The position numbers were made by a program, and so were the translations under genes. A stretch of 64,000 bases of DNA from contig MU008151.1 in NCBI GenBank assembly GCA_010909165.1, positions 434,001-498,000 on the forward strand, given 5' to 3'. A model generated the notes under the pieces. That model did no database searches, was not told the DNA's origin, and saw nothing but the letters and a program-made list of their open reading frames with translations. Below are positions 1 to 56,838 of the stretch, one piece after another (position 1 is the first letter of the stretch; each line of letters starts with the position of its first letter). The DNA is from Anthoceros angustus (lineage: Eukaryota > Plantae > Anthocerotophyta).

Positions 1-451
1 AGTGTGGAGAAGTTTTACAAAGTCCTCAAGGAAAAGATGAAGAGTGAAAAGGGGACAATAAAGGAGGCAAGTATGAAAAGCAATGTGCTATCCACATGGA
101 AAAGTGCGAAGAAGCAAAAGCATGGTAGTGTAGGGACTCAGATAGCAGACCATGATTGAAGGCAGAAGCTTGTGGCATAGCATTAAAGGGGGGAGAAAGC
201 TGTTACGAAGCAGAGGTGGAGAGAGGAAGTACTTGCAGCTGGGCGATTGGGAATCGTGGCTCCTATGACTTGCAGGTGGGTTACCTAACCGGCGAGCGCA
301 GAATAATGGGGAAAAAGCAGGGGTAATAGAAAAATGGTAGAAATCCCTAAAACCTGAATCTGCACGTGAAGCGTGGAACAGTGGAGTTACAACGGCAAAT
401 TGATTGAAATCCAAGTGCCGAGCTGAGTACGCTGGAATCGCATTTGCCAAC

Positions 452-1957
452 ATGCCGGGTGCCGTCGACAAGGACGTGAAGCAGAGCAGAGAGGCAGCAG
501 CAGTTGCTTTACAGCTTTTCCGGAGCATCGGCTTGGACGAGCGCACTGCCCACACCGCCATTGCCAATTCCAAGCTCTCGGCCCAGCTCCGGCAGGTGAT
601 TAGCGAGGTGGGTGTGCTCCGCTCCGCCCCGCATTGCTCCGCTGCTGCTGCCAAGCTTCCTGGCCCCGGCAATGCGCCACCCGAGGCCGCCCCCCATGGT
701 GCCTGATGCGTGACACGTGTTGGGCGCTTCGGTGCAGGCAGGAGTGGGAGATGGGTGCGACGGGGCTGTGGGAAATCTGCTGTTTGCGGTACGGCTGACG
801 CCATTCCGGGTGCTGTGAAGGAGGAGGTTGTGAGGTGGAGTGGAGTGGAGTGGAGTGGAGTGGCTGAGCTGAGCTGAGCTTGGGGCCCGGGTGTGGCAGG
901 TGGCGACCCAGTATCCTGTGAACGCGCTGCGGCACCGAGGGGCGTTGCTGGAGTATGTCACAAGCTATAAGGTGTGGTGGGTGCTTCGCGAACCCTTGCG
1001 GGTGGGAGAAGAGGGAATTTGGGTTGGAATTCCGGGGCCTGATGCGTTGTGGGTGCAGATAAGGAGCGTCTCGCAGCTGGAAGGCGCTTTTGGGTACTTG
1101 GCGTCTGTGGGGTCGGGGGCGTTGGATTATAGGGAGCTGGAGAAGAGGAGCGGTTTAGGTGAGTGAAGGGAGGTGTTGGGTTGTGCAGCGCGCGTGGTGG
1201 GTCGTGTTGGGTTGGTTGTAACGGGTGTGGGTGGGGAATGTGAATTCAGGCGTGGACGGGTCTGCTGACCGCATCAGGTTGGCTGTGGAGGAGGTGGTGA
1301 GAGTGAACAAGAAGCAGCTTCTGGTTGAGCCTTATCGGATAGATGGTGGGTCTTTGCTCAGCTCAGTCTGTGACGTTCAGTGATTTGCTTCCTTGTGAGT
1401 GAAGGATTGAGGAGGATTTGTATGCTGGATGGTAGTGGGTTAGTACACTTGCATTGAATGCGGTGTCTCTTGGCCCTGTTTCAGTGGGTGCCTTGCTTGG
1501 TCAAGCTCGGGAGCAAGTGCCATGGGCTGATGTGAAGCATTTGAAGGTACCACCATGGGGTCCAGGAATGTCGGGATCACACATTCTGCTCGGATGTGTG
1601 GATGTTGGTTTTTGGGTCTTGTGCTGCCCCCATTCATGTCTCCTGGTTTCGTTCTCCAGGCAGAGATGGATTTTCAGCTCAAAAGAGTGCTCGGGGAAAG
1701 CACTGCTCTGGACGAGGAGGAGAGGTCATTCACCAAGAAGAAGGAAAAACTAAAAGTTGAGGTGCGTTGTGGCTGCGAGAGTCTGGATGGAAGAGCTTCT
1801 TCATATTGAGCTGGCTCTTCTTGTGTTGATGCGCTTGTAAGACAACTTCGTAAGGTTCGTTCCGTGCCTTGCTGTCGTGCAGGAGCCGACCAAAGCTGCA
1901 CAAGCTGTCTCAGCTCCTGAGCCAGAAGAGACTAACCGGTATGCTGGATATCTCTGA
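452..1957 (+). CDS. Glutaminyl-tRNA synthetase N-terminal (non-catalytic, tRNA-binding) domain only; 8 exons; about 237 aa if read to TGA 1955-1957, or spliced onto the MIZ1 ORF
   Basis: Hand-spliced exons 452-607, 738-788, 900-971, 1059-1158, 1250-1345, 1485-1546, 1660-1761 and 1883 onward, all GT-AG and phase-consistent. They give LQLFRSIGLDERTA..NSKLSAQL / DGCDGAVGNLLFA / VATQYPVNALRHRGALLEY / QLEGAFGYL / VGALLGQAREQVPWAD / KKKEK, collinear with the eukaryotic GlnRS N-terminal extension. No TRFPPEPNG/HIGH catalytic exons were found in the window. Confidence 0.85.
832..880 (+). repeat. (GTGGA)n followed by (GCTGA)n pentanucleotide microsatellite in intron 2 of the GlnRS-NTD gene
   Basis: Directly visible: gtggagtggagtggag... 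then gctgagctgagctgagct. Confidence 0.9.
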
Positions 1958-2094
1958 GAATCTGCAGTGAAGCTTGTGATTTTTCAGTCTGTCAGGTTCA
2001 GGACCGGAAACTCTTGTTTGCTAAGGCTCTCTTCCCTCTTTGCTGCAGCCGAGGGAGGGAGCTTGGGGAGAGTGGGAGGGGGGCGGTACCTAGC

Positions 2095-2811
2095 ATGCGT
2101 GGGTCCAAGGAAGGTTCCGTCGTGAGCTCGCAAGCCAATCCCAAGGGCCTGATCAACGGCTTGCAAAGTCCAGGCAGTCCCTTGGATTCACAGATGATGC
2201 TTCTCGGAGTGGACAAGAAGAAGTCCAAGAAGTTTCTAACCATCGTCAGGTCCATCTTCCACGTTTCCATGCCTTCCTTCCCCTGCAAGTGGCTAGCCCT
2301 GCCTCCGGGCCCCTCGGACTCCCCTTCCCTGGGCAGTCGCATCACGGGTACTCTATTCGGCTTTAGGAAAGGCCATGTGCATTTCGTGGTGCAGGAAGAT
2401 CCCAAATCCCAACCTGTCCTACTGCTGGAGCTCGCCACACCCACCAGCTCCCTTGTCAAGGAGATGGCCTCGGGGCTGGTCAGGATTGCGTTGGAATGCG
2501 AGAGGACTCCCAACAGGGGAAGGTTGTTTCAGGAACCCATGTGGACTATGTACTGCAACGGAAGGAAGACAGGGTATGCCATCAGACGGGTATGCTCGGA
2601 ATCAGACCTCCATATTCTGACTCTGGTCCAAGCTGTGTCGATGGGTGCGGGCGTGCTCCCCATAGACGACGATGGCCCGAATGGCGAGCTCATGTACATG
2701 AGAGCTCGGTTCGAGAGGGTTGTGGGTTCCCGGGATTCTGAGGCTTTCTACATGATGAACCCTGATGGCACTGGTGGGCCAGAGCTCAGCATCTTCTTGT
2801 TGAGAATATAG
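2095..2811 (+). CDS. MIZ1: MIZU-KUSSEI 1-like protein (DUF617), single coding exon from ATG 2095
   Basis: Motifs GTLFGFRKGHVHFVVQEDP, LLLELATPTSSLVKEMASGLVRIALEC, WTMYCNGRK.GYA, VSMGAGVLP, GELMYMRARFERVVGSRDSEAFYMMNPDG.GGPELSIFLLRI are characteristic of DUF617/MIZ1. Confidence 0.93.
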   Translation: MRGSKEGSVVSSQANPKGLINGLQSPGSPLDSQMMLLGVDKKKSKKFLTIVRSIFHVSMPSFPCKWLALPPGPSDSPSLGSRITGTLFGFRKGHVHFVVQEDPKSQPVLLLELATPTSSLVKEMASGLVRIALECERTPNRGRLFQEPMWTMYCNGRKTGYAIRRVCSESDLHILTLVQAVSMGAGVLPIDDDGPNGELMYMRARFERVVGSRDSEAFYMMNPDGTGGPELSIFLLRI

Positions 2812-4206
2812 ACGACTTGGCCAGACCGAACGGTGGCCACCACATTTCACCATAGCTGATCATCACTAACCGCAGTCTTGTTGCCACACACATCCACCAG
2901 ATGCTTTTGACCAGACAACAGAGCCCAGCTCTCTCCACGACAGCGATGGAGCCAGCTGGTGGAGTCTGCAGGTTATTTGCTAGCTGGAGCACAAGTCTTG
3001 TAATGTACGTCGCAGGGAGAGGAGATGTGCCATATCGTGCTGAGCATTGCACTGATTTTTTTCAGAAGAGTGTCAATATGGCGTGTGGTTCATGTACCTC
3101 AAATGTGCGTGTTGAGGTACAAGGTTAGCAGACGTGTGGAGGAGGAATCTGTGTGTACAGACTAGAAGGGTGGTGGTGGCACATATGTGTTACACATCTG
3201 GAGATTGGCAAGAGACATACAATCCGATGGCACCACACCACAGCACGGAAGTTGGGTTGCGCAAATTGGATGCCATATCTGTCGAAGGATGATGGAAGAT
3301 GTTTCTCCCCTCCACATTCACATTCCTTGGCGGGTAGCTGGGCATGGAGACTTCGGAAAACCATTCATTTGCAGAGAAGACATTGCTGTTCGCATGCAAT
3401 ATTCATGTGACATTCTGTTGGGCAGGCAAAGAGACATCCTTCACTTGCTTGCCAGCTTGCTTCCCCCACTCACTGACTGATCAGAGTGACTTATTATTAT
3501 GCTGGTGCTCAGACTGGCAGTAGCACCTTTCTTTACGTCCTCTTGCTACCTCAGCAGGCACAGTAGCAGATAATGCTTGGCACAGGACTCAACAGCTTGT
3601 GAGAGTCCCGTTGTGGGAGACTTGATTCACGATGCATGCTGGCTTGCTGGCTGGCACACTAGAAATACCACACAGGCTGATTCAGTGCCTGTCTCATAAA
3701 TGCCCACGTGTTGTCCGCTACACGACGGATCACATCTTGTGGGCACCACGGCCTCACGTTAGGTGGGCAGTAATGTGACACGATAGCCACAGTGTGCAAT
3801 CAACTCTCTCTTTCCCCTCCTTGGACGTAAAGTGGAAATCGTCTTGCGCTTCTTGGGAATCTCCCGTGTTTGTCTCTTCGTCGACAACCGGTTTACTCGG
3901 TGCTTCGAAAGGAATCACCGACACAACACTCTCTTGTTCCTTACATCCTCGAGAGGAGTGTGGACGAAGGGCTGATTGGTGGAGGATTGGGTTCGAAAGG
4001 AGAGCGAACAAAGGCTTGATTGGTGGACAGTCGGTTGATGCATGCATGTTGAAGAAGAAGATTTAAGTGATACTTTCATAAAATTTCAATTTAGAAATAA
4101 TTTTATTTTTCCTGGCATAGAATATACTTTAGAGCTTAATTTCATGTTTATTTGTTTGAAGGCCAAATGGAGGCGGACCAAGTGAGTGACATCCATACAT
4201 GAGTTC

Positions 4207-5360
4207 ATTGGAACTCTCCATTAAGCGTCCTTAGGATGGATGAGTACTCACATTGGGTGCAAATTCATCTCCCTTTCATAGCCCTTATGGGGCTACTTGT
4301 TATATATAAGATCATGCTTGTGGGACTGTCTTTTGTCTCCACACCGTGCCGGGCTGCTGGTTCTTAGTGCCTTACGGGGTTACTCTATATCTTATTCCTA
4401 GTTCAGGATTGCGATGTACACTTTGACATATCTACAGCGTCAAAGATATGTGCTCATGGGCCTTTCACAACGAAGAATCCAAAATGGAGTGCGCAGTCAC
4501 CGTCGTAGGGCGTGGAGAGATAGGGAATGCCTATTTTTATTCATCTTTCACTTGTCTTTTGATTGATAAACTATGCCTTCACTCGCGGCTTACAGTGCCG
4601 TTTGTCAGTGCTGGACCCATAAACGTAAATGCTTAATATGTACAGGTTGGTAGCATTAGAACCTCGCAATTGAACCCGCAAGACCATTGCGTGTCTTGTG
4701 CACGTCGGGTTTTGATATTGAAACCTGTTCGACCCTTCGCAGATTTATTAGAGCCATCATAAATGGTGAACAGTGCTCTCTTAAAGCGCATTCCAATCGG
4801 GATTGCGCTTTCGTGATTGCGACATCGTAGTTATTCCTTATTTAGGTTGTTTAAGAAACATTTATAACGACGGCGAAGGCGCCTTCCCTTTTATTATCTT
4901 CGTTGTGAAAGGCCCTTCCGATGAGGTGCAAACCCGTCTGCCTTTCATGTCCCTTTACTTCGTAGGGCACTAAGAACTGGCGGCCCCGCACGCTACATAA
5001 ACGAAGGCGGCCCCGCACGCATGATGTTATAATACTTTGACATATATATAAAATAAAATCTCGAATTATTGTAAAAACAAAATTGCAGGCAAACCACATT
5101 AAGCTTAAGCGTATGGGTTTATTGGAACTCCACAATTAAGCGTCCTTGGGTCCTATGAGTGCTTGAATGAGTGCCGTTCATTTATGAGCTTCATGGACTA
5201 TGGGATTAGCTTTTGTAAATGTCATGCCCTCAGTCTCTGCAGTGCGCAGGGTTGCTAATTGTTAGTGCCCCTCAAGGGTTACTTGAGATCCAATTCAAAT
5301 GCAGGACTTTGATGTATACTTGAAGTTCTATTAAGTCTTCAAATTCATAGTCATTTGGGC
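4207..5360. repeat. Degenerate direct plus inverted repeat complex (probable non-autonomous transposon relic)
   Basis: 4207-4460 resembles 5121-5360 (attggaactc..ttaagcgtcctt; ttagtgcc..gggttact). 4345-4372 and 4458-4510 are reverse-complement matches to 4965-4992 and 4866-4915 (e.g. gggcctttcacaacgaaga / tcttcgttgtgaaaggccc). Confidence 0.65.
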
Positions 5361-7903: not shown

Positions 7904-10757
7904 ATGGTGGATGTCCGAGCTGCGGCCATCGTGCTGCTGCTGGCATGGGCGTGGGGCTTAGCCAGGCATGCTTCTCCCGCTTCCGCCTCCGCTGCCGCTG
8001 TCTGCGTGTGCGGCAACCTCACGGTTCCCTTCCCCTTCAGCCTGCAGGGGAACGGGAATGGATCCGGTTGCGGCAGCGGCAGCAACGGGAGCAGCGCGAG
8101 CTCGGGCCTCCCGGGCTTCGCAATCCGCTGCGACGCGGTGGCCGGGCCGTTGCTGGACACGCGATCCGGCCCGTTCCGGGTGCTGGCTCTCGACCCGAAA
8201 CAGGCGTGGGTGCAGCTGGGCAACGCGCGGCTGGTGGCGCCCTCGACCTGCGCCGGGCCGGGGCAGAATGGGAGCTCGCGGCTGGATCTCGGCCCTCCTC
8301 CTCGCCCTTCGCGGTCGCGGCGGGAACCGGTTCGTGACGCGCGGGTGCGGGGCTGTGGGGACGTTCGTCACGGACCGGGAGGCGGCGTCCACCTCCTGCC
8401 CCGTGCCCAAATGCGGGCTGCTGCGCGGGGCGGAAGAGATCTGCACGGTGCCGTTCCCGGCCGGGGTGCGCGTGGCGTTGATGCGGAATTCGATCCAGGA
8501 CCGGGTGCAGGCGAATGCTCTTACAACAGCACGCTAGCCTACTCGCCGGATGGGGAGGAAGCGTATTGGAGGCAGGATTCAGGGTGGAGTTCGCTGTGCG
8601 GGGCGGGGAATTGCTCGGAAGCTGCGGGGCGGGCGGGGTTCGCTTGCGCCCAGTCCGCGGTGTGCGCGGACGGAACGTGGGTGGATGGATACACCTGCGC
8701 CTGCAAGGACGGGTTTGTGGGGGATGGGTATGTTGCGGGGAGCGGATGCCAAGGTATTGGGATTTTTCTGGCTGGGGAGATTTTTCTCGGGCTGGATCGT
8801 GGCAGTTTCATTCAATCGTCTTGGGGCTTGGGATGAATGCAGAGCAAGACGCGTGCTCCGAACCCGGGATCAACCTCTGCGCTTCGAATGCCGGGTGTCG
8901 AGTGGAATCAGGAGTGGCCACTTGCTATTGCCCGGCAGGATTCACGGGTGACGGGATGCGGGATGGGGAAGGCTGCACAGGTGGGGACCTTGTCGGCTGG
9001 CTGGCTTGGGGAAAGGGGAAGGGCAAAGGGAGAGGGGAAGGGGGAAAGGGGGAAGAGGAAGGGGGTTTGGGTGTTTGTAACAAAAATGGATCTTGACGCT
9101 GTTTTGCAGATAAGTCTGCCTGTGTCTTTTGCTCTAGTTTCTCCAACTGCACAAATTCTGGCGGGGGGGCATACAGGTGTGTCTGCGACACGGGGTATGA
9201 GGGAGACGGCACCGTGAATGGGACCAGGTGTTCTGCCAAATCGCCTTCTTCGTCGGGCCTTGAAGCAGGTGGGAAGACTAACTGCAGGAAGAGGTACCTC
9301 TGGAGATGTTGGGTTGTCTTGGCTTGTTGTTGCAGTAGCTGAGCTGATTGATGTGATGACTTCCGACCGCAGGAGTGGTTGCAGGAGGAGTTGCAGCTGC
9401 TGTTGTGATAGTCCTTGGTTGCTGCTGCTTTGCTGCAAGGACGGCGGTGGTGTTGAGGCAGGAAAGGCCGTTGCGACGGGAGCTCAGGAGGCTTGAGGAG
9501 CTCATTCAAGGCTGTTCTGGGCCCCAAGCTGCCATCATCTTTCCTTACAAGGTAGCGGCTGCAGGAGCTTGCTTGGCTTGGTTTTGGTCAAAGGCTTGCT
9601 TCTTGTGTCTGTTGCGTAATAATGTAAGCTGCTGTTGCTGCTGTTCATGTGCCTGCTGGACCTGCCACACATTGGAAAAACACGATAAGGTGATAGAGCT
9701 GGCCACAAAGCGATTCTCCGAGTCCCAGAGGCTTGGCGGAGGGGCATTCGGCACTGTGTATGCGGGCAAGTTGTCTCAAGGCACTCGGATAGCAGTGAAG
9801 AGGGTGAACCAGAGCAACGCCCACGGCCTGCAGCAGTTCCTGAACGAAGTGGAGTGCCTGGCCAAGGTGAACCACACGGGCCTGGTGCGCCTGCTGGGCT
9901 GCTGCCTGGAGCTTCGAGACCCTCTTGTGGTGTATGAGTTTGTGGCCAATGGGACTCTGCGGCAGCACCTGCAGCAGGAGAGGGGCAAGATACTGACCTG
10001 GGGGACGCGGATGAAGATCGCTGTGGAGGTTTCTCAGGCTCTTGCCTACCTGCATTCAGTGTTGACACCTCCCATCTTTCACCGGGACGTCAAGTCCTCC
10101 AACATTCTACTCGACAGCTCCTTCGCTGCTAAGGTGGCTGATTTTGGCTTGTCCAGGTTGGTGCCGTTGGGTGCCACCCATGTCTCCACCATGGCTCAGG
10201 GCACTCCCGGGTACCTGGATCCTGATTATTACCGCACCTACCATCTCACCGACAAGAGTGATGTTTACAGCTTTGGAGTTGTTCTCATGGAGCTGGTCAC
10301 AGCAAGGAAGGCCGTAGACTTGAACCACGAGGAACGGGAGGTTCCCCTGGCAAGTCTGGCCATCCAGAGGCTGTCCAGCGGCGAGTTGGATCAGATGATT
10401 GATCCAGCTCTACAGCCCACCATGACCCCAGAGTCACTGCATATGATCCAGCAGGTTGCGGAGCTTGCTTTCCGTTGTTTGGCCTTCACTCGACAGGACA
10501 GACCATCCATGAATGAAGTATGTTGTCCTGGCCTGGAACCTCCCCACTTTTTCAGATGCTTGAAAAAACCGAGCCTACTCATCGTACCGGGATGGGGTGT
10601 TCTGCAGGTGGCGGATGCGCTTGAGACCATCCGACTGTCCTCCTGTCTCAACCAAGGGTCGTTTGCATCGAAACCTGTGCCATTCCATGGTCGTCGAGGG
10701 GATCCGAAGCAACCTCTTGGCCACCTACTGTTTACGAACAATTCCGTGAGAAGGTGA
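7904..10757 (+). CDS. Wall-associated kinase (WAK): signal peptide, GUB_WAK_bind, three EGF-like modules, TM, RD kinase; exon 1 carries three compensating -1 frameshifts
   Basis: CGNLTVPFPF..GCG..PGFAIRC; EGF exons (YTCACKDGFVGDGY..GC; CYCPAGFTGDG..GC; CVCDTGYEGDG..RC); TM VVAGGVAAAVVIVLG; kinase GGGAFGTVY, IAVK, HRDVKSSNILLD, DFGLSR, GTPGYLDPDYY, DKSDVYSFGVVL. Confidence 0.9.
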
Positions 10758-18300: not shown

Positions 18301-20377
18301 TGAATAGTGTCTGGTCTGGCCCAGGTATCGGATAACACTGTTCAATGAATTGTACTACCTTGTTGCGGGAGGAACTATATGGACCGGTAAGTTAGGACCA
18401 ACTTCTAGCCGTGGTAGAGGATGCCTTGGTCTCATGACTGACATCGTTTTGACTGGTCTCAAATCAGTTTCTTTGTATGACAACATGTTCAGATGGTGGC
18501 CCTTCGTTGCAAGAGAGGGGGGAGGTCATATCAGCACAAGCGTCAAAAAGGCCAGAAACTATCCTTATTGGGCAGTCTCCTGTGGCCGTGGATGATTATG
18601 AGCGTAGCCAGGATGCGATTCCTTCAACACATGTCAACTTGAATATTGAAGGGGCAACGGATGGGATATCTGTCTCTCCTGAACACCGTGCCGTAGCCAG
18701 TTCGAACAGCTCTTCCCCAGGAAGGGAGGGTACGTATCCTTTAGATGCTAAGGTGTTTTTTGAGACAAGTGCCGAGCTGCTTGAAAACTCCCAACACAGC
18801 AAGGAATGTAGGCCGGGAAATGAGTCATCGGGCAAAGGAGAACGTGAGAGTGAGCCTGAACAGGATGGTAGTATCACAGATTCAGAAGGGTCCGCAGAGC
18901 GAATGATATTGAAGACCATCGAAGCAGTTGTGCCACATAAAAAGTATGACTCTGCATCGTTCGGCTTTTCCAGTGGAACAGCTTTGCTTTCCAAAGGCGA
19001 GGAAAATGTGGGCCAGTTCTTGTACTTGGAGGGAGTGGAGTATGCCTTCTGGTGCACTTATGATGTGCACTTTTATGCATCCTTTGCACTGCTTAATCTT
19101 TTTCCCAAGCTGGAGCTTAGTATTCAACGTGATTATGCGGCTGCTACCCTCACGCACCAAGCTGACAGAGTCAAGTACCTGGCTGAGGGTAACTGGGGTG
19201 TGAGGAAAGTTTTCGGATCGGTACCACATGATTTGGGTACCCACGATCCATGGGTTGAGGTCAATGCATACAACATTCATGATACCAGTAAGTGGAAGGA
19301 TTTGAATCCTAAGTTTGTTGTCCAAGTGTACAGAGATGTGGTGGCTACCGGAGATTTAGGTTTTGCGAAAGCAGTCTGGCCTGCAGTGTATGCAGCTATG
19401 GCATATATGGATCAATTTGATCGCGATAGGGATGGTCTCATCGAGAATGATGGGTTCCCTGACCAAACTTACGATACCTGGCCTGTGCACGGTATCAGTG
19501 CTTACTGTGGAGGTCTGTGGCTAGCGGCCCTTCAAGCGGCTGCTGCTATGGCTGACCTAGTACAAGATACCAATGCAGCTAAGTACTTCCGTGGGAAATT
19601 TAGCCAAGCAAGGGTTGTGTATGACAAGAAGCTTTGGAACGGCTCCTACTTCAATTACGACAGTGGAACGAGCAGTAATAGCAAGTCTATTCAGGCTGAC
19701 CAAATGGCAGGGCAATGGTATGCTTGGGCATCTGGGTTACCACCCCTCTTTGAGGACTACAAGGCACGAAGTGCGCTGAGAAAGATCTTTGATTTTAATG
19801 TGCTCAAGGTGCAAGGAGGCAAGATGGGCGCTGTCAATGGAATGCACCCAGATGGCAGAGTTGATGAAACTGCCATGCAGTCTCGAGAGGTGTGGACAGG
19901 TGTAACGTATTCCCTGGCTGCTGCTATGATCTACGAAGGAATGAGGGACGAGGCATTTATAGCTGCTGAGGGAATCTACCTGGCTTCATGGTTGGACTTG
20001 GGGTAAGCCAGCAACATGCGTTTGTACTCTGTTTTGAATAAGAATGCCTGTACTCGTTGCTCTGTCGATGCAACTTCCTTACTACCAACCTCTGTGGCAC
20101 CAGGTACTGGTTCCAGACTCCAGAGGCCTGGACAACAAGTGGAAGCTATAGGTCCCTCACTTACATGCGGCCACTCGCTATCTGGGCTATGCAGTGGGCA
20201 CTGTATCCGCCAAAGAATGTCGCGGAAGCTCCGAAGATACAGCAAATGGAGAAGGGATGCAGCTACCTGCACGAAGGCTTCTCTGCTGTTGCAGATGCTT
20301 TGAGGCATGCTCCAAGGCCACCGATTCGTCAACTTTGCAATCTCTGTTCCGCCGTTCTCTGCTGTAAATGCCGTTGA
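15365..20377 (+). CDS. GBA2: Non-lysosomal glucosylceramidase (GH116), multi-exon
   Basis: N-terminal [67 protein letters not shown]; catalytic part [65 protein letters not shown]. Confidence 0.95.
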
Positions 20378-24360: not shown

Positions 24361-25802
24361 ATTGTGACCATGATCCTTGCAGCATACGCCCATTTCTAGG
24401 ACTCTTTCGTCTTGTTTTTGTTCGTTGACGTAAAGTTTCCAGGGGTTTGCTTCTCGCAAACCATGGCCAAAGAGGTCCTTTCTTCGATGAGTGTTGGTTT
24501 TTGTTATTTTTCGGGGTTTTTTTTCCCGAATTTAGCCAAAACCCTTTAACCTTTTTCAATGGGACACTGCTATGGATGGATGGCTATGTAGGACTAGCAT
24601 CTACAACACAGCGTGGAAATAATGGCTATGAGGTAATTAAACTCTTGTTTGGTTTGCAAATTACTACATAGTTATGGAAGTATTATATGCAACTTCAATT
24701 ATGTGTCGTCAGATAATGCCTAGAGTTGGATAAAGGTGAGATCGATTTCTTAGAGTGCATTTCAGAAATAAGGCTACGCTACAAACACAATCTAACATTA
24801 TTTACCATCTTAAGATATAGAAAAAAAAGATACTAAACTTGGATTCTAGAATTTGTCTACCTTGTACCTTTCCACCATCGGGGCCTTCTCTAAAAGATGC
24901 GCTGGAATCCTTTGTGGGTTTCTAGTCATGAAAATAAATATTCCATGAGGGTATAGTTTTTATTCAATAAATTATATGAATAAATATGATTGTTGGTTCT
25001 CTTGAAGACGGACAATTACCATCCTTCCTAAGAGTTGATCCATAGAATGAACAAGCAGCTCAACAAGGACAATGTACTATTCTTCTTCTACTATTAAAAA
25101 GAGTTTCCTCTTGTCTAGAATAAAATGGAAAGATACGTATTTTTATAAATAATATAATATGTATTTTAAGTGATCGATGGCGAGGTTTTGGTTGAAACGA
25201 GGCATGACACCGCGCCCACGTTAGTAATCAGTGCTTTGTGCGAGGTTCGAAAAATGCACCAAGGTTGCCCGTATATTCCCGTGTGATAGAATCCGCTTTG
25301 GCAGTGCAAATCCCACAGCTGATGTTAGCGGTTGCTATCGGAAACGGGGCAGAGCCACATTCCGCGCCCGATCTCTACTTCAGCTGCTATGGCACCTCGT
25401 TCCGTGTGTGATGGACGGACAGGAGATGGCAGAGGCCCACCATCGTCCTCCCCAGCTATAGCCCATTTCAGTCCCAAGCCTTGTCTTGTCACACCTTTCC
25501 TCGAGCTCCTGGCCGCTTATTTTGTGCTCTCTCGTTCCCTGCTTTCTTGTTTCCTGCTCTCGTCGGTTGAGTTCCTCCGGAGCGTTGTGGCCATGGTCCC
25601 GACGCTCTCAAATCTCATGGCTCCCGGCAGCACTTCCACCAACAGCAGCCTCCTTCTTGCTTCCGGATGCCAGTGTCGCTGCGTCTCCATTCTGTGCACC
25701 GTCGCGGCCTTGGCGGCAGCCGGGCAGCACAGCAGGTTCTGGGCCAGGCCTGGGAAGGTGCCGGGGAGAGTTGTGGGCAGGTGCTGCTGCACCCAGTAGA
25801 GC

Positions 25803-25846
25803 TGGGTCGTGGGTTGTGGGTTGTGGGTTGTGGGTTGTGGGTTGTC
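25803..25846 (+). repeat. (GGGTTGT)n heptamer repeat just upstream of the WAKL start codon
   Basis: About 5-6 copies directly visible. Confidence 0.9.
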
Positions 25847-25857
25847 TGTCTGCCGCC

Positions 25858-27982
25858 ATGAAGAAGCTGCTCCTGGCCGTGGTGATGGCGGCGGCAATGC
25901 TGCTCCCGGCACGCTCGGGCGGCACCGAGTGCCCTGCCTGCGGGGACATGGATGTCCCGTACCCGCTCAGCACCGGTGCAGGCTGCGGGCTGCCGGGATA
26001 CAACCTGACGTGCGATGCGGAGCGGGGCGTTCTCGTCTTCCCTGCGCTGTCTGGCAACCACGACGTCCTGAGCATCGACTCGGAGTCCCGGCAGCTCATC
26101 GTGCAGCCCGGTAGCATCATCGCGAATACCTGCGTCTCGACTGAGCTCAGCAGCTTCGGCTTCAGCATCGATGAGTCGTCGCAGTTCTTCCTGGGAGACG
26201 GCAACAGCATCCTCATGTTCAATTGCTCGCAGTTTCTCCTGTACTCTCCACTCAACTGCAGTCGGGCAGGGGTTGGCAGCGAGGCCAGCCCCTGCCGCAG
26301 GTTTCTCAATGAGGTGGTAAGGGCTCCGAATCGATTCCGTTTCCCATTTGAGTCCTCCCTCCCGTTCCCCTCAAGTTTTCATTTCGTCTGGTACTGTGAA
26401 TGAGCAGGAGCCCGGAGCACGCACGGGGGGAGCCCTCAAGGCTGCTTGTTCTGCCCCACCAGGCAACATTTGCTGCAAGTACAATCCCGGGGGCCAGCGA
26501 AAAATCAATATGAATTCCACGCAGTGCTCTGCGTACACCAGCGTGGTGAATTTGGACGACAGTGTGAACGCCAGCGCGTGGACATACGGCATGCAGATCA
26601 AATGGAAGTATCGCGGATGTGTCGGGAACTGCAACCACGGCGTTCACGAAACGGCCATCATAGCAGGTGCGATGGAGAGCGTTTTCCTGAATTCATTCTG
26701 ATGGCCGGCAGCATCGCCGAGCAGTATGGGGTAAGTTTGCATGTCCTGATTCTGAGCGTGGCGCTCCCGCAGGCCTGAGCGCGGGGTTCGCGACGGTGAT
26801 GGCGGCGGCGATGATCTTCGCGGTGCTGTACAGGAAGAAGCAGGCGCTGAAGCGAGCGGAATCCCTGCGGATCCGGGAGCTCTCGGACCTGCTGGCGATG
26901 GGCAGCAGCGGGCGATCGGCCAGGGTGTTCTCGGCGCGGGAGATGAAGCGCGCGACGAGCGACTTCGCGGCGGACCGGGTGCTGGGCAGTGGAGGATTCG
27001 GGGACGTGTACCGCGGGATGCTGGACGACGGGACCGTGGTGGCAGTGAAGACGGCCAAGATCGGCAACACCAAGAGCACGGAGCAGGTGATCAACGAGGT
27101 GCGCATCCTGTCGCAGGTGAATCACCGCAACCTGGTGCGTCTCCTGGGCTGCTGCGTGGAGATGAAGCAGCCGCTGCTGGTGTACGAGTACGTGCCCAAC
27201 GGGACTCTGCTGGAGCACCTGAGCGGCGCCCGAGGCAGCGTCCTGGACTGGCTCACCCGCCTGCAGATCGCCCTGCAGACCGCCGAGGCCCTGGCGTACC
27301 TCCATTCCGCGGCCTACCCGCCCATCTACCACCGCGACGTCAAGTCCTCCAACATCCTGCTCGACGACGAGCTCAACGTCAAGGTGTCCGATTTCGGCCT
27401 CTCCCGCCTCGCCTCCCTCGACCTCACCCACGTTTCGACTTGCGCGCAAGGGACCTTGGGCTACCTGGACCCCGAGTACTACAGAAACTACCAGCTCACC
27501 GACAAGAGCGACGTCTACAGGTATGCTGCTGATTTGCCCACACACACAAGTCCCCTTCCTTCCTTCCTTCCTTCCTTCCTCATGGCATTCACTTGTTTGT
27601 CCTTTCTTCTCTTGGCAGCTTTGGGGTTGTGTTATTGGAGTTGGTAACCTCACAGCGAGCGATAGATTTTGCGAGGGATGAGGATGATGTGAATTTGGCC
27701 ATCTTTGCATTCGGGCGTCAAGAAATGGGCCAGCTTTTAGACGTGGCTGATCCTCACCTCAAGGATACCACATGGCCGACCACACTAGACACTATCTTGG
27801 CGACAGCATTGCTTGCGCTAGGCTGCTTGCAGGAGACTAGAGTTGATAGACCTCCCATGAAGGAGGTTGTCGAGGAGTTGCAAGTGATCATAGGAATTGA
27901 GGAGTCCGGTGAAAAAGTGATTCCTCAAAGTATGCACAAGCCCTATTCTTGCGCGGTGTCAAATGTTTCTGATTGTGATTGA
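25858..27982 (+). CDS. WAK-like receptor kinase (WAKL15/20-like: GUB_WAK_bind, no EGF, TM, RD kinase)
   Basis: Signal MKKLLLAVVMAAAMLL; CPACGDMDVPYPLSTGAGCG; CCKY; TM; FSAREMKRATSDF..LGSGGFGDVY, AVKTAKIGN, HRDVKSSNILLD, CAQGTLGYLDPEYYRNYQLTDKSDVY|SFGVVLLEL. Confidence 0.92.
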
Positions 27983-41285: not shown

Positions 41286-42284
41286 TCAGCTACCTCTGGT
41301 AAAAATTGCCTCTAGCCTTTCCAGGGAACCGTGGAGGTGACCAATGTTCATTCCAAGCATGGGCTCACCAGTGCCCAGTCCACCATGGATGTCAGGCAAG
41401 GAGTATTCTGCATTCCAGCCCACACGGAAATCCAGACCAGGACAGGCAGGAAACGATGTTTTATGCTGGATCTGGGTGACAGTGGAGCCCCCCAAAGATG
41501 TGGCCAGCTTCCACTTCCAACCTGTTGTGCCGTCTTGGAAATTGTGACCCAAGCCAACTTGCAGGTTCACCCAGGGACAGAGAGGGATTTTCTTCGTCAG
41601 CAAACGGACATCGGTGAACTGGGGCTCCCAGATCACCTTCCACTTCCGATCGGTTGCAGCCGGTTTCAACACAAGCTTCGTGTCGAGTCCCTGGGCTTGG
41701 AAGCCAAGGACAGAGAGGCGAGGGGGAGAGCTCCCAGAACCGACAAGGTCTGCCTTTCCCAAACCTGTTATCCTCAAGTTCGCTCCAATCCTGTACCCTT
41801 GCAAGTGCTGCCGGAACTTCACATGGTACTCCTTCGGATTCCAATCTATGCTGTAAAAGTCCCACAACCATGACAGATTCCCGCAGCTGCCTGTCTGGAC
41901 CAGAGAGGGCTGCTGCCCTACAGAGATGTGATGCTGCTGCTGCTGCTGCTGCTGCTGGCATGGCTCTTGGTGAAAATCGTGTTGCACGGGCAGACAGGCC
42001 TGCCGCCGATCATATGAGACCGAAGTACTGTAGGATGGACCCTGTTCTTGCACCATGAGATGCATCGGTGGCGCCGAAGGCTGCACAGGCTCTCTGACGA
42101 AATCGTTCACAGAAGCAGGGCTTCGTCGCCGTTGCTGAATTCTCTCTTTCAGCCTGGTGAACAAACTGGATATCCTCCGCGCCCCGCCCTTTCTGCGGGC
42201 CTTGCTCCCCGCCGCTTTCTCCTTTTCTGTCAGCACATGGACAGACCCATATGACACTCCAGCGGATATAGATCGCTTCTCCAT
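41286..42284 (-). CDS. Conserved uncharacterised plant protein (resembles the Arabidopsis At5g11280-type family, from recall), intronless, with a basic/polyQ N-terminal extension
   Basis: 332-aa ORF. C-terminal KLVLKP..RKWK.IWEP..DVRLLTKKIP..NLQVGLGHNF..GWKWKL..GWNAEYSLP..GTGEP..SLERLEAI is beta-strand-rich; a (CAG)n polyQ tract lies near 41932-41956. Confidence 0.8.
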   Translation of the reverse strand: MEKRSISAGVSYGSVHVLTEKEKAAGSKARRKGGARRISSLFTRLKERIQQRRRSPASVNDFVREPVQPSAPPMHLMVQEQGPSYSTSVSYDRRQACLPVQHDFHQEPCQQQQQQQQHHISVGQQPSLVQTGSCGNLSWLWDFYSIDWNPKEYHVKFRQHLQGYRIGANLRITGLGKADLVGSGSSPPRLSVLGFQAQGLDTKLVLKPAATDRKWKVIWEPQFTDVRLLTKKIPLCPWVNLQVGLGHNFQDGTTGWKWKLATSLGGSTVTQIQHKTSFPACPGLDFRVGWNAEYSLPDIHGGLGTGEPMLGMNIGHLHGSLERLEAIFTRGS

Positions 42285-54477: not shown

Positions 54478-56838
54478 TCATCTCCCTTGCAGCTGAACGT
54501 CCAACCCAAGGTAGGATTCTGAAGGAACCCAATCTTCCGACTTGGACTGGATTAGCCCACTGCTTTCGTGCGTGCCGAGCGGAGAGAGCGTGGGACTAGG
54601 AAATGCAAATGCCATGTATTGAATGCTCTTGATCTTACTCACCACCTCCTGCATGCTGGGTCTGTCATCCTTCTCCGTGGCCAGGCACTGGAAACCCAGC
54701 TCCGCCAGCGCCATGGCCGCATTCTTGGCGCCCTCGGTGTTCGTCAGCCCCGGCTCCAGCAGCTCCTCCATCGCCCCGCTCTGAATCCTCGCGGCCGCCA
54801 TGGCCGACAGGTTCACCTCCCCCCTCTCCCTGCTCATGTCCACCGCCTTCTTCCCGGAAACGAGCTCCATGAGCACCACCCCCAGACTGTACACGTCGCT
54901 CTTGTCGCTGAGATGGTAGGACTGGTGGTAGTCCGGGTCGAGGTAGCCCGGCGTGCCCTGCGGCGCAGTCGACACATGCGTCCGATCCACGTCGTGCAGT
55001 CGACTGAGCCCGAAGTCGCCCACCTTGGCCCGGCATCCCTCGTCCAAGAGAATGTTGCTGGACTTGACGTCGCGGTGCACGATCGGCGGGTGCAGCGAGT
55101 GGAGGTGGGCCAACGCCTCCGCCACTTCCACCGCTATGGACAAGCGGGTGCGGCAGTTGAGAGACGGAACGGAACGGGGCCCGTGGAGATGCTCCGCCAG
55201 CGTTCCGTTGCCCACGTACTCGTACACCAGAATGCGCTGCTCCGGGCAGCAGCCGTAGAGCCGCACCAGGTTGGGGTGTTTGGCCTGGAATCCGAATAGC
55301 AGATACGAGTCAGATACGAATCAGCCGTATTGAGAATACAGAAGAATCTCGAGGCTCAAGGTCTGGCACTTTTGGACATGGAAGAGCAAATGAGAGCATG
55401 CACCTGAGAGAGCACGGTGAGCTCGGCCATGAACTGTTGCCTGCCTTGGAGGTTAGCCTGGTGGAGCTTCTTGACAGCCACTTGGCGGCCATCTTTGAGC
55501 TTGCCTCTGTACACCACGCTGAAGCCGCCTCCTCCGATCCGCCTCTCTGCTGCGAAGTTCTTGGTTGCCGTTGCCAGCTCCTTGTAGGAGAACCTTGTCG
55601 GATCTGTACGTGCAGTCCGGCCTCCACAGGTGAGTGGATGGAGGTCCAGTCCGCTTGTCTTGGTTAGGACAAGCTAGGGTAGAAAAAGACAAGCCGGGCC
55701 AGAGGAGTGACCTGAGGACGACCCGGAGCCTGCGTCCATGATGGTGGCGATGTTCTGCATCTGCTTGCCGTGTGATCGCCTGCTTTTCCAGGATTTCAGT
55801 CTTCGGCGGCCGAGGAGGAAACACAAGATGGAAGCGGCAACCCCTGCTCCACCTGCCGCCACGCCTGTTCACGAGCCGGAGCCGGAGCCATGATGCTGTC
55901 AGTAAACTCCATCACGGACAATTTCATGAACTCCAAAGCAAGCTAGCGGGCAGATTCCAGCTCACCTCCTAACACAGGGCCTAGCTTGTTTGCAGACGAA
56001 GGTGAGGACGAAGGGGTGTTGTCTTCAGGCGTAGATACATTGTACGAAAATTCAATCGTCGGAGAGCACACAATGGTTAAGGAACGGTCAGGGCTCGGAT
56101 ACTGGAGGATGCTCGAGTATGGTAGGGTTGAACTTCCTGGACACCAATTCAAATCCAGCACGTCAAGAACCTGTGACAGATTTAAACTCCTATGCTTCTC
56201 ACATTTGGAATCCAAAATCACATCTCACCATCTGGCGGTTTGTCAGTGACGCAGAAGTAATTCGGGTGCGTTGGATTGAAACACAGCGAGCTCCGGGAAA
56301 CCAAGAGACCCGGATCGGGCGCGTTCTGGTAGATGGTGGCGTTCCAATTCTCTTGAATGCCTCCGTCACAGTCATGACTACCGAACTTGGCATCTCCAAA
56401 TGTACTACAGAGCTTGGTGAAGGGCAACGTCCAGTTGTCGGGGGAGAATACGATGAATGTGCTGCTCATCGATAATATGCTCGCGTCAGGAGGTGTGAAT
56501 TTCCCGGCCCGAGGACCTTCCAACGTGCTGCAATCGAGAAGGCTGGTGTCGTTGATGCTGATGGTGTGTCTGTTGTAGTCGATGCTGACATCATAGCTCC
56601 CCGATTCAGTGTTGAGGACAAGCCGCGCATCCCCGGTGCACGAAAGCAAACCCTCGAACTTGCGATCCCCGCAACCAGGCTCCAATCCGAATGGATACCG
56701 CACCGTCGTGTCCCCACATACTTTCCTACACGCCTGATCCGAGCCTGCACGCATACCAGCGGGGGCTAAGACCAGAAGCACCACAACCCATACACGAATT
56801 GCGCTCATTTTTTCCCCGAGCAAGAAGGATTCAACCAT
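54478..56838 (-). CDS. WAKL/LRK10L-type receptor kinase (GUB_WAK_bind, TM, RD kinase); one exon junction has an unresolved phase
   Basis: Signal WVVVLLVLAP; CRKVCGDTTVRYPFGLEPGCG; TM GVAAGGAGVAASILCFLL; PTRFSYKELATATKNF..IGGGGFSVVYRGKLKDGRQVAVK, HPNLVRLYGC, HRDVKSSNILLD, STAPQGTPGYLDPDYH, DKSDVYSLGVVL. Confidence 0.88.

Follow-up and report, generated by a model that had tools for sequence, protein, structure and literature searches.

Exons resembling the N-terminal domain of glutaminyl-tRNA synthetase are spliced in frame to a MIZ1/DUF617 gene in Anthoceros angustus

In a stretch of 64,000 nucleotides (nt) of the Anthoceros angustus genome (Anthocerotophyta; assembly GCA_010909165.1, contig MU008151.1, positions 434,001 to 498,000 of the forward strand; hereafter the window, whose own numbering is used for all positions), eight exons resembling the N-terminal domain of glutaminyl-tRNA synthetase (GlnRS) are spliced to the open reading frame of a MIZ1 gene (family DUF617), giving one mRNA with a continuous reading frame. 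Translated from the candidate start codon at 452, this mRNA would yield a fusion protein of ~485 amino acids, consisting of a putative GlnRS N-terminal domain, a 15-residue linker and full-length MIZ1. An initial annotation of the window, made from its letters, had proposed a candidate chimeric gene here; the same RNA contigs carry the GlnRS-like exons and the MIZ1 open reading frame in frame, which bears out that proposal, and we regard a real, expressed fusion gene and protein as probable.

The gene model was rebuilt from the letters of the window, with exon borders, phases and translation recomputed. Contigs from Logan for four public runs with four different organism labels (X1, X3, X14 and X23) were aligned to the window; X1, which represents the window's own organism, matches the window exactly, with X3 and X14 ~5% diverged from it. 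These contigs are k-mer assemblies, in which a contig across two genes does not by itself prove a single transcript and rare forms can be missed. The rebuilt model agrees with the intact, phase-consistent eight-exon structure of the initial annotation: exons 1 to 8 (452-1938) have GT-AG signals at every border and agreeing phases, and encode 231 residues without a stop. The introns are short (~100 nt), and the G+C content is roughly 50%, both of which suit a hornwort; intron 2 contains two short tandem arrays (825-887), (GGAGT)n followed by (GAGCT)n. The parts of the gene are as follows.

452-607, forward strand: exon 1, residues 1-52; candidate start ATG at 452 and start of the putative GlnRS N-terminal domain.
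738-788, forward strand: exon 2, residues 53-69, phase 0; the joints of 607 to 738 and of 788 to 900 are present in RNA contigs.
900-971, forward strand: exon 3, residues 70-93; the joints of 788 to 900 and of 971 to 1059 are present in X1, X3 and X14.
1059-1158, forward strand: exon 4, residues 94-126; terminates in the hinge-like G125-L126-G127 (1152-1158 plus 1250-1251).
1250-1345, forward strand: exon 5, residues 127-158; a cassette exon of 96 nt, with the frame kept if it is skipped.
1485-1546, forward strand: exon 6, residues 159-179; Trp172 (1523-1525) lies in a VPWAD motif, and the joints are present in RNA.
1660-1761, forward strand: exon 7, residues 180-213; a Lys/Glu-rich linker region, with the joints of 1546 to 1660 and of 1761 to 1883 in X1, X3 and X14.
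1883-1938, forward strand: exon 8, residues 214-231; the last exon of putative GlnRS origin, 56 nt, with its donor at 1938/1939 and the joint of 1938 to 2049 in X1, X3 and X14.
1939-2048, forward strand: intron 8, 110 nt, GT..AG; its excision creates the fusion.
2049-2094, forward strand: former MIZ1 5' leader, now the linker RGRELGESGRGAVPS; open in the MIZ1 frame and carried by RNA contigs that also include exon 8 and the MIZ1 open reading frame.
2095-2811, forward strand: MIZ1/DUF617 coding region, complete in a single exon; 238 amino acids plus stop.
2812-3718, forward strand: 3' untranslated region, ~900 nt; covered by X1 contigs 2048-3136 and 3136-3718, and reaching 3705 in X3 and 3700 in X14.

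The fusion depends on the donor G/GTATGC at 1938/1939 and on an acceptor (...tgctgcag) whose last letter is 2048. The join of 1938 to 2049 completes a split codon (CG plus C, arginine) and reads ..EPEETN-R-RGRELGESGRGAVPS-MRGSK.., so that the joined frame of 485 codons passes through 15 codons of the former leader into the MIZ1 methionine and closes at the stop codon 2809-2811. When the donor at 1938/1939 is left unused, the frame closes seven codons on (..NRYAGYL, stop at ~1957), 137 bp short of the MIZ1 ATG at 2095, the distance that the initial annotation had also given. Its predicted donor, acceptor, arginine codon and length of 485 amino acids were all recovered on recomputation, and the predicted junction is present in RNA of X1, X3 and X14; the dicistronic arrangement that it had offered as an alternative is not supported, since the frame is continuous.

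The RNA contigs reproduce the predicted model to the base, with joints of 607 to 738, 788 to 900, 971 to 1059, 1158 to 1250, 1345 to 1485, 1546 to 1660, 1761 to 1883 and 1938 to 2049. The last of these, the fusion junction, is present in three runs with three organism labels (X1, X3 and X14), and in X1 one contig of 1,989 nt follows the window over 491-3136, through all junctions, with no mismatch; a second contig reaches 3718. For the bin 1912-2058, the mean depth in each of X1, X3 and X14 equals the value expected from its 37 exon letters, which indicates that no contig touches intron 8. The initial annotation had named the acceptors at 1987, 1995 and 2001 and intron retention as competitors of the 1938-to-2049 junction, and a separate MIZ1 transcription start as a finding that would speak against a fusion. 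In the X1, X3 and X14 contigs only the junction of 1938 to 2049 was seen, with no intron 8 retention, no use of the three rival acceptors (which are rejected on the zero coverage of 1939-2047) and no transcript start in 1939-2047; nor does any transcript end near the would-be stop at 1957 in the RNA contigs of these runs. In X3, the depth of the N-terminal exons (~155, two isoforms summed) is similar to the 191 of the contig spanning exon 7 through the end of MIZ1, which implies that most MIZ1 mRNA carries the upstream exons. In X14, a length change of three letters within 2048-2277 preserves the frame. Run X23 behaves like DNA, with an unspliced contig continuous over 1564-3288; the two parts thus adjoin in the genome of a relative too, and the window is not mis-joined at this point.

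The ATG at 452 has an A at position -3, and no ATG occurs upstream of it in the transcribed 428-451; scanning ribosomes should therefore initiate at 452 and not 1.1 kb downstream in the mRNA. An X3 contig is unbroken over 428-608, which supports the ATG at 452 in the organism of X3. Transcripts occur both with and without exon 5. X1 and one X3 contig contain the exon; the skip joint of 1158 to 1485 is the sole form in X14, and in X3 has a depth of 92.8 versus 64.8 for inclusion. The skipped form would encode 453 amino acids, with no stop added and with the 32 residues after the hinge removed. An unspliced, divergent X3 contig (window 1079-1592) lacks 1206-1438, including exon 5, and cannot be aligned after 1592, and in X23 the contigs come in two versions over 550-693 and over 1447-1590. 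Taken together, these contigs point to another copy or allele in the relatives, lacking exon 5, from which the skipped transcripts may derive.

The MIZ1 half is readily assigned. The region 2095-2808 matches PF04759 with 242 bits (E 3e-72) over profile positions 1-159 of 159, DUF617 homologues number 2,490 at E<=0.001, and the closest MIZ1-like proteins (from ferns, lycophytes and transcriptome contigs) are 81-84% identical over the domain. An AlphaFold model of the MIZ1 part, computed with 46 sequences, consists mainly of beta strands and has a predicted local distance difference test score (pLDDT) of >90 over residues 81-238. Fold searches with this model were uninformative (Foldseek best E 0.012; VIA best Z 5.7). 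The DUF617 model (2335-2808) shows weak resemblances, far below a reliable match, to LigD 3'-phosphoesterase (Z 5.7 and 4.5) and to the CYTH/triphosphate-tunnel enzymes (TTM; Z 3-3.5).

The upstream half was scored exon by exon, rather than as a 231-residue spliced domain or as a whole fusion, and its assignment to the GlnRS N-terminal domain is supported only piecewise. Exon 1 aligns with positions 4-36 of PF04558 (GlnRS RNA-binding region part 1) with E 8.4e-6 and 26.3 bits, against a cut-off of 28.6, and its best match in the PDB is human GlnRS residues 3-38 (E 0.003-0.009), identical at half of the aligned positions. For exon 4 there is a weak match to PF04558 positions 79-110 (E 0.08-0.16, 12.4-13.4 bits), colinear with exon 1. 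Exons 3, 5, 6 and 7, which are too short to score alone, gave no Pfam match singly; PDB searches with exons 4, 5 and 7 and with exon 3 plus exon 4 returned nothing beyond chance, and an exon-1 query for N-terminal fragments and a protein atlas gave nothing useful. Stable binding of tRNA(Gln) by yeast Gln4 requires both the hinge that separates its two subdomains (G112-V113-G114, almost invariant) and a conserved tryptophan, W160 (PMC3333875). By motif and spacing, the putative domain has a corresponding hinge, G125-L126-G127, at the border of exons 4 and 5, and a tryptophan, W172, in VPWAD 47 residues on (48 in yeast).

The Lys/Glu-rich end of the N-terminal half falls where the catalytic core would start in plant GlnRS, a comparison that serves as a lead only. 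The core of a class Ic synthetase carries HIGH and KMSKS-type motifs. When all six frames of the 64 kb were scanned for motifs, neither a class I HIGH-type motif nor PEPNG turned up, and the sole match was a lone MSKR on the minus strand; with no catalytic motif in 64 kb, the locus is not the working synthetase gene. GlnRS catalytic exons at this locus, which the initial annotation had considered as a sign of mis-assembly, are likewise absent from the window. A MIZ1 gene nested in a large GlnRS intron was also considered and is rejected, on the absence of catalytic motifs from the 64 kb and on the end of the transcript near 3718.

Proteins with this architecture were sought with the open stretch 1936-2808 among DUF617 proteins of 160-509 amino acids, a range that admits a product of 485, with a two-row profile at 200-639 amino acids, and in a set of representatives without a length limit. 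PF04558 occurs in 0 of the 120 best matches from two protein database searches, and, with length unrestricted, none of 150 representatives is fusion-like; in the longest DUF617 proteins a second domain is either lacking or is NUDIX or PPR. The N-terminal domain has no match in 278 DUF617 proteins by local BLAST, and none by tBLASTn at 76 plant MIZ1 loci on metagenome contigs, for which as much as 6 kb of flanking sequence was included. The two closest of those loci (L001 and L002, moss- or fern-like) have ordinary MIZ1 transcripts of 249-250 amino acids with no GlnRS-like part. The MIZ1 of this genome is itself missing from the protein collections (an exact look-up found no self match), and the genus seems to be unrepresented in them; the absence of the fusion there therefore says little about the closest relatives. 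A search of a literature library found no paper naming both DUF617 and glutaminyl-tRNA synthetase, and recent work on bryophyte MIZ1 mentions no such fused form. The GlnRS-domain–MIZ1 architecture appears to be undescribed, though both domains and exon shuffling are known, and the lineage-specific character that the initial annotation ascribed to it fits these searches.

The differences between the window and its relatives suggest that the N-terminal module is under purifying selection. The differences listed reach only to 1477 and include ten inside exons, six of which are synonymous. Both of those in exon 1 (499 and 533) are synonymous, and in the spliced form, over exons 1 and 5, five listed differences are synonymous and one is conservative (Val-to-Leu). 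The three non-synonymous differences at the end of exon 4 (1131, 1141 and 1146) are confined to a minor, unspliced and more divergent contig family. In an unspliced X23 contig covering 32-577, the listed differences number 23 in 63-274, one in 275-451 and two in exon 1. The 177 nt directly upstream of the ATG at 452 (275-451) resemble a conserved promoter or 5' leader, with one listed difference versus 23 in 63-274.

Several observations weigh against a functional fusion translated from 452. That single molecules carry both exon 1 and MIZ1 is deduced from k-mer contigs rather than from long reads, and the fusion is known from DNA and RNA, with the protein product predicted. In the window's own organism the first exon and the start codon may differ from those of the model: the X1 contig departs from the window upstream of 491, its 245 nt there match nothing in 1-4400, and the last 30 letters of this stretch are absent from the whole 64 kb by letter search. 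The window has an AG at 492-493, to which an upstream exon beyond the start of the window could be spliced (at 494); the 245-nt stretch could be such an exon, or the contig could be a chimera with a paralogue. Skipping of exon 5, the major form in two relatives, removes the start of the second subdomain, which argues against a strictly conserved tRNA-binding geometry, and exons 5 and 7 taken alone match nothing in Pfam or the PDB. The fusion is absent from the protein databases searched, and the substitution sample comprises ten sites.

One rival explanation is that the transcript is real and the GlnRS-derived exons are a neutral leftover, the decaying 5' fragment of a duplicate that gives MIZ1 a promoter and leader; a fused N-terminal part would then lack a function of its own, or MIZ1 would be made mainly from the ATG at 2095. 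An open in-frame join is not very improbable (an estimated chance of ~1 in 3 that the frame agrees, multiplied by ~0.5 that 15 codons are open), but none of the eight exons is broken by a stop or a frameshift, and the context of the ATG at 452, with its A at -3 and no ATG in 428-451, favours initiation there rather than downstream. The frequent skipping of exon 5 and the 12 differences in the 159 letters of exons 7-8 in X14 would fit a neutral leftover, as would the failure of the searches made to find the fusion outside this group; yet the same splicing is kept in three organisms ~5% apart, the differences in the spliced form stand at five synonymous to one conservative, and both the hinge and the Trp are retained. 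On balance, we consider a neutral leftover unlikely.

An artefact, in which a separate gene for the N-terminal domain only and a MIZ1 gene are joined by occasional read-through, by contig assembly or by a mis-join of the genome, would take advantage of the fact that a k-mer contig spanning two genes does not prove a single transcript. Such joining would nevertheless have to reproduce the exact removal of a GT..AG intron three times over, in separate runs from different organisms. In all three runs intron 8 has zero contig coverage, so that the spliced form is dominant; exon 8, at 56 nt, is shorter than a read, and an unspliced contig of a relative (X23) spans the junction region. We therefore judge an artefact to be very improbable. 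A conjoined read-through of two independent genes, each with a complete transcript of its own, is not supported by the three RNA runs, given the lack of intron 8 coverage, the lack of an end near 1957 and the similar depth on both halves; minor independent transcripts, of a kind that contigs can miss, may nevertheless exist.

Beyond the fusion gene, a stretch of ~35 nt at 4180-4216 is common to many unrelated X1, X23 and X3 contigs with loose ends on both sides; it lies in the AT-rich spacer that follows the gene, and is probably a piece of a dispersed repeat. Other genes of the window were recognised by domain matches.

7904-10754, 25486-26400 and 54481-55266: wall-associated-kinase-like receptor kinase genes, with GUB_WAK, EGF and protein kinase domains.
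18477-20003, reverse strand: large exon of a GH116 glycosyl hydrolase (DUF608, 7e-144).
41289-42284, reverse strand: DUF7781 gene (1.7e-68).

The GH116 and DUF7781 genes look like ordinary neighbours.

We propose that the fusion gene arose when a partial copy of a cytosolic GlnRS gene, comprising the promoter and the exons of the N-terminal domain, was placed upstream of an intronless MIZ1 gene; alternatively, the remainder of a GlnRS duplicate at this position may have been lost. The donor of exon 8, left without its original partner, would then have come to pair with an acceptor within the former 5' leader of MIZ1, and translation from the ATG at 452 would yield the fusion, together with an isoform of 453 amino acids without exon 5. 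MIZ1 homologues of Arabidopsis, Amborella, Physcomitrium and Marchantia are located on the cytosolic face of the endoplasmic reticulum (ER) (bioRxiv 10.64898/2026.10.12.758437) and are tied to the regulation of a Ca2+ pump and of cytokinin receptors. A GlnRS module would be cytosolic, and with MIZ1 on the cytosolic face of the ER the topology of the fusion is compatible.

A helical, GatB/YqeY-like module with its hinge and Trp kept might give ER-sited MIZ1 an additional binding surface, a function that we advance tentatively; its partner could be tRNA(Gln), another RNA or a protein of the synthetase complex, and MIZ1 signalling might thereby be coupled to translation or amino-acid status. Retention of RNA binding by the N-terminal domain is possible, with limited confidence on our part. 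Modules of this fold can serve otherwise: in the complex I subunit NUQM of Pichia, a GatB/YqeY-like fold acts as a protein-protein bridge and not as an RNA binder (PMC12487887). A more far-reaching reading is that the fused domain brings tRNA(Gln) or another RNA to ER-associated MIZ1, and that the DUF617 family as a whole acts with tRNA or the translation machinery, for example by adjusting cytokinin or Ca2+ signalling in response to uncharged tRNA or to amino-acid status; the weak likeness of the modelled DUF617 barrel to barrels that process nucleic-acid ends or triphosphates would fit such RNA reading, at a level far below a reliable match, and we think this reading unlikely.

Root hydrotropism requires MIZ1, and recent work connects the protein with cytokinin receptors; its molecular activity is unexplained, and its fold has no solved relative. 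An expressed and apparently constrained fusion to a tRNA-sensor module is a testable hint at the partners of MIZ1, and were RNA reading true, the fusion would be a natural 'Rosetta stone' for the role of MIZ1/DUF617. If the N-terminal part is neutral, the gene is a lineage-specific curiosity only. As an RNA-verified new plant gene that would derive from exon shuffling of a housekeeping synthetase gene, it adds to the few re-uses of GatB/YqeY-like modules outside tRNA charging.

In its downstream half, the predicted protein resembles the MIZ1/DUF617 proteins of land plants (such as Arabidopsis MIZ1 and Marchantia MpMIZ1a) in having a full DUF617 domain, a single coding exon and a variable N-terminal stretch, and MIZ1-like proteins of ferns, lycophytes and seed plants are 60-84% identical to the window's MIZ1. 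Ordinary MIZ1 proteins have ~200-300 amino acids and no second domain, whereas here ~246 extra residues precede the MIZ1 methionine. The upstream half is comparable to the appended domain of GlnRS (yeast Gln4, human QARS1; PF04558/PF04557), with exon 1 aligning at the start of human GlnRS, exon 4 colinear with it, and a G-x-G hinge and a Trp at the yeast spacing. It differs from yeast Gln4 in the middle residue of the hinge (Leu in place of Val), from GlnRS in having one isoform without the 32 residues after the hinge, and from the GlnRS enzyme in that the domain is spliced to MIZ1 rather than to a class I catalytic core. The closest parallels for a helical module of the tRNA-sensor type in a new protein context are Deinococcus GlnRS, with its C-terminal YqeY domain, and Pichia NUQM; the lineage, the partner and the mode of origin differ, since in A. 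angustus the module would come from a eukaryotic GlnRS gene and is joined to its partner by splicing.

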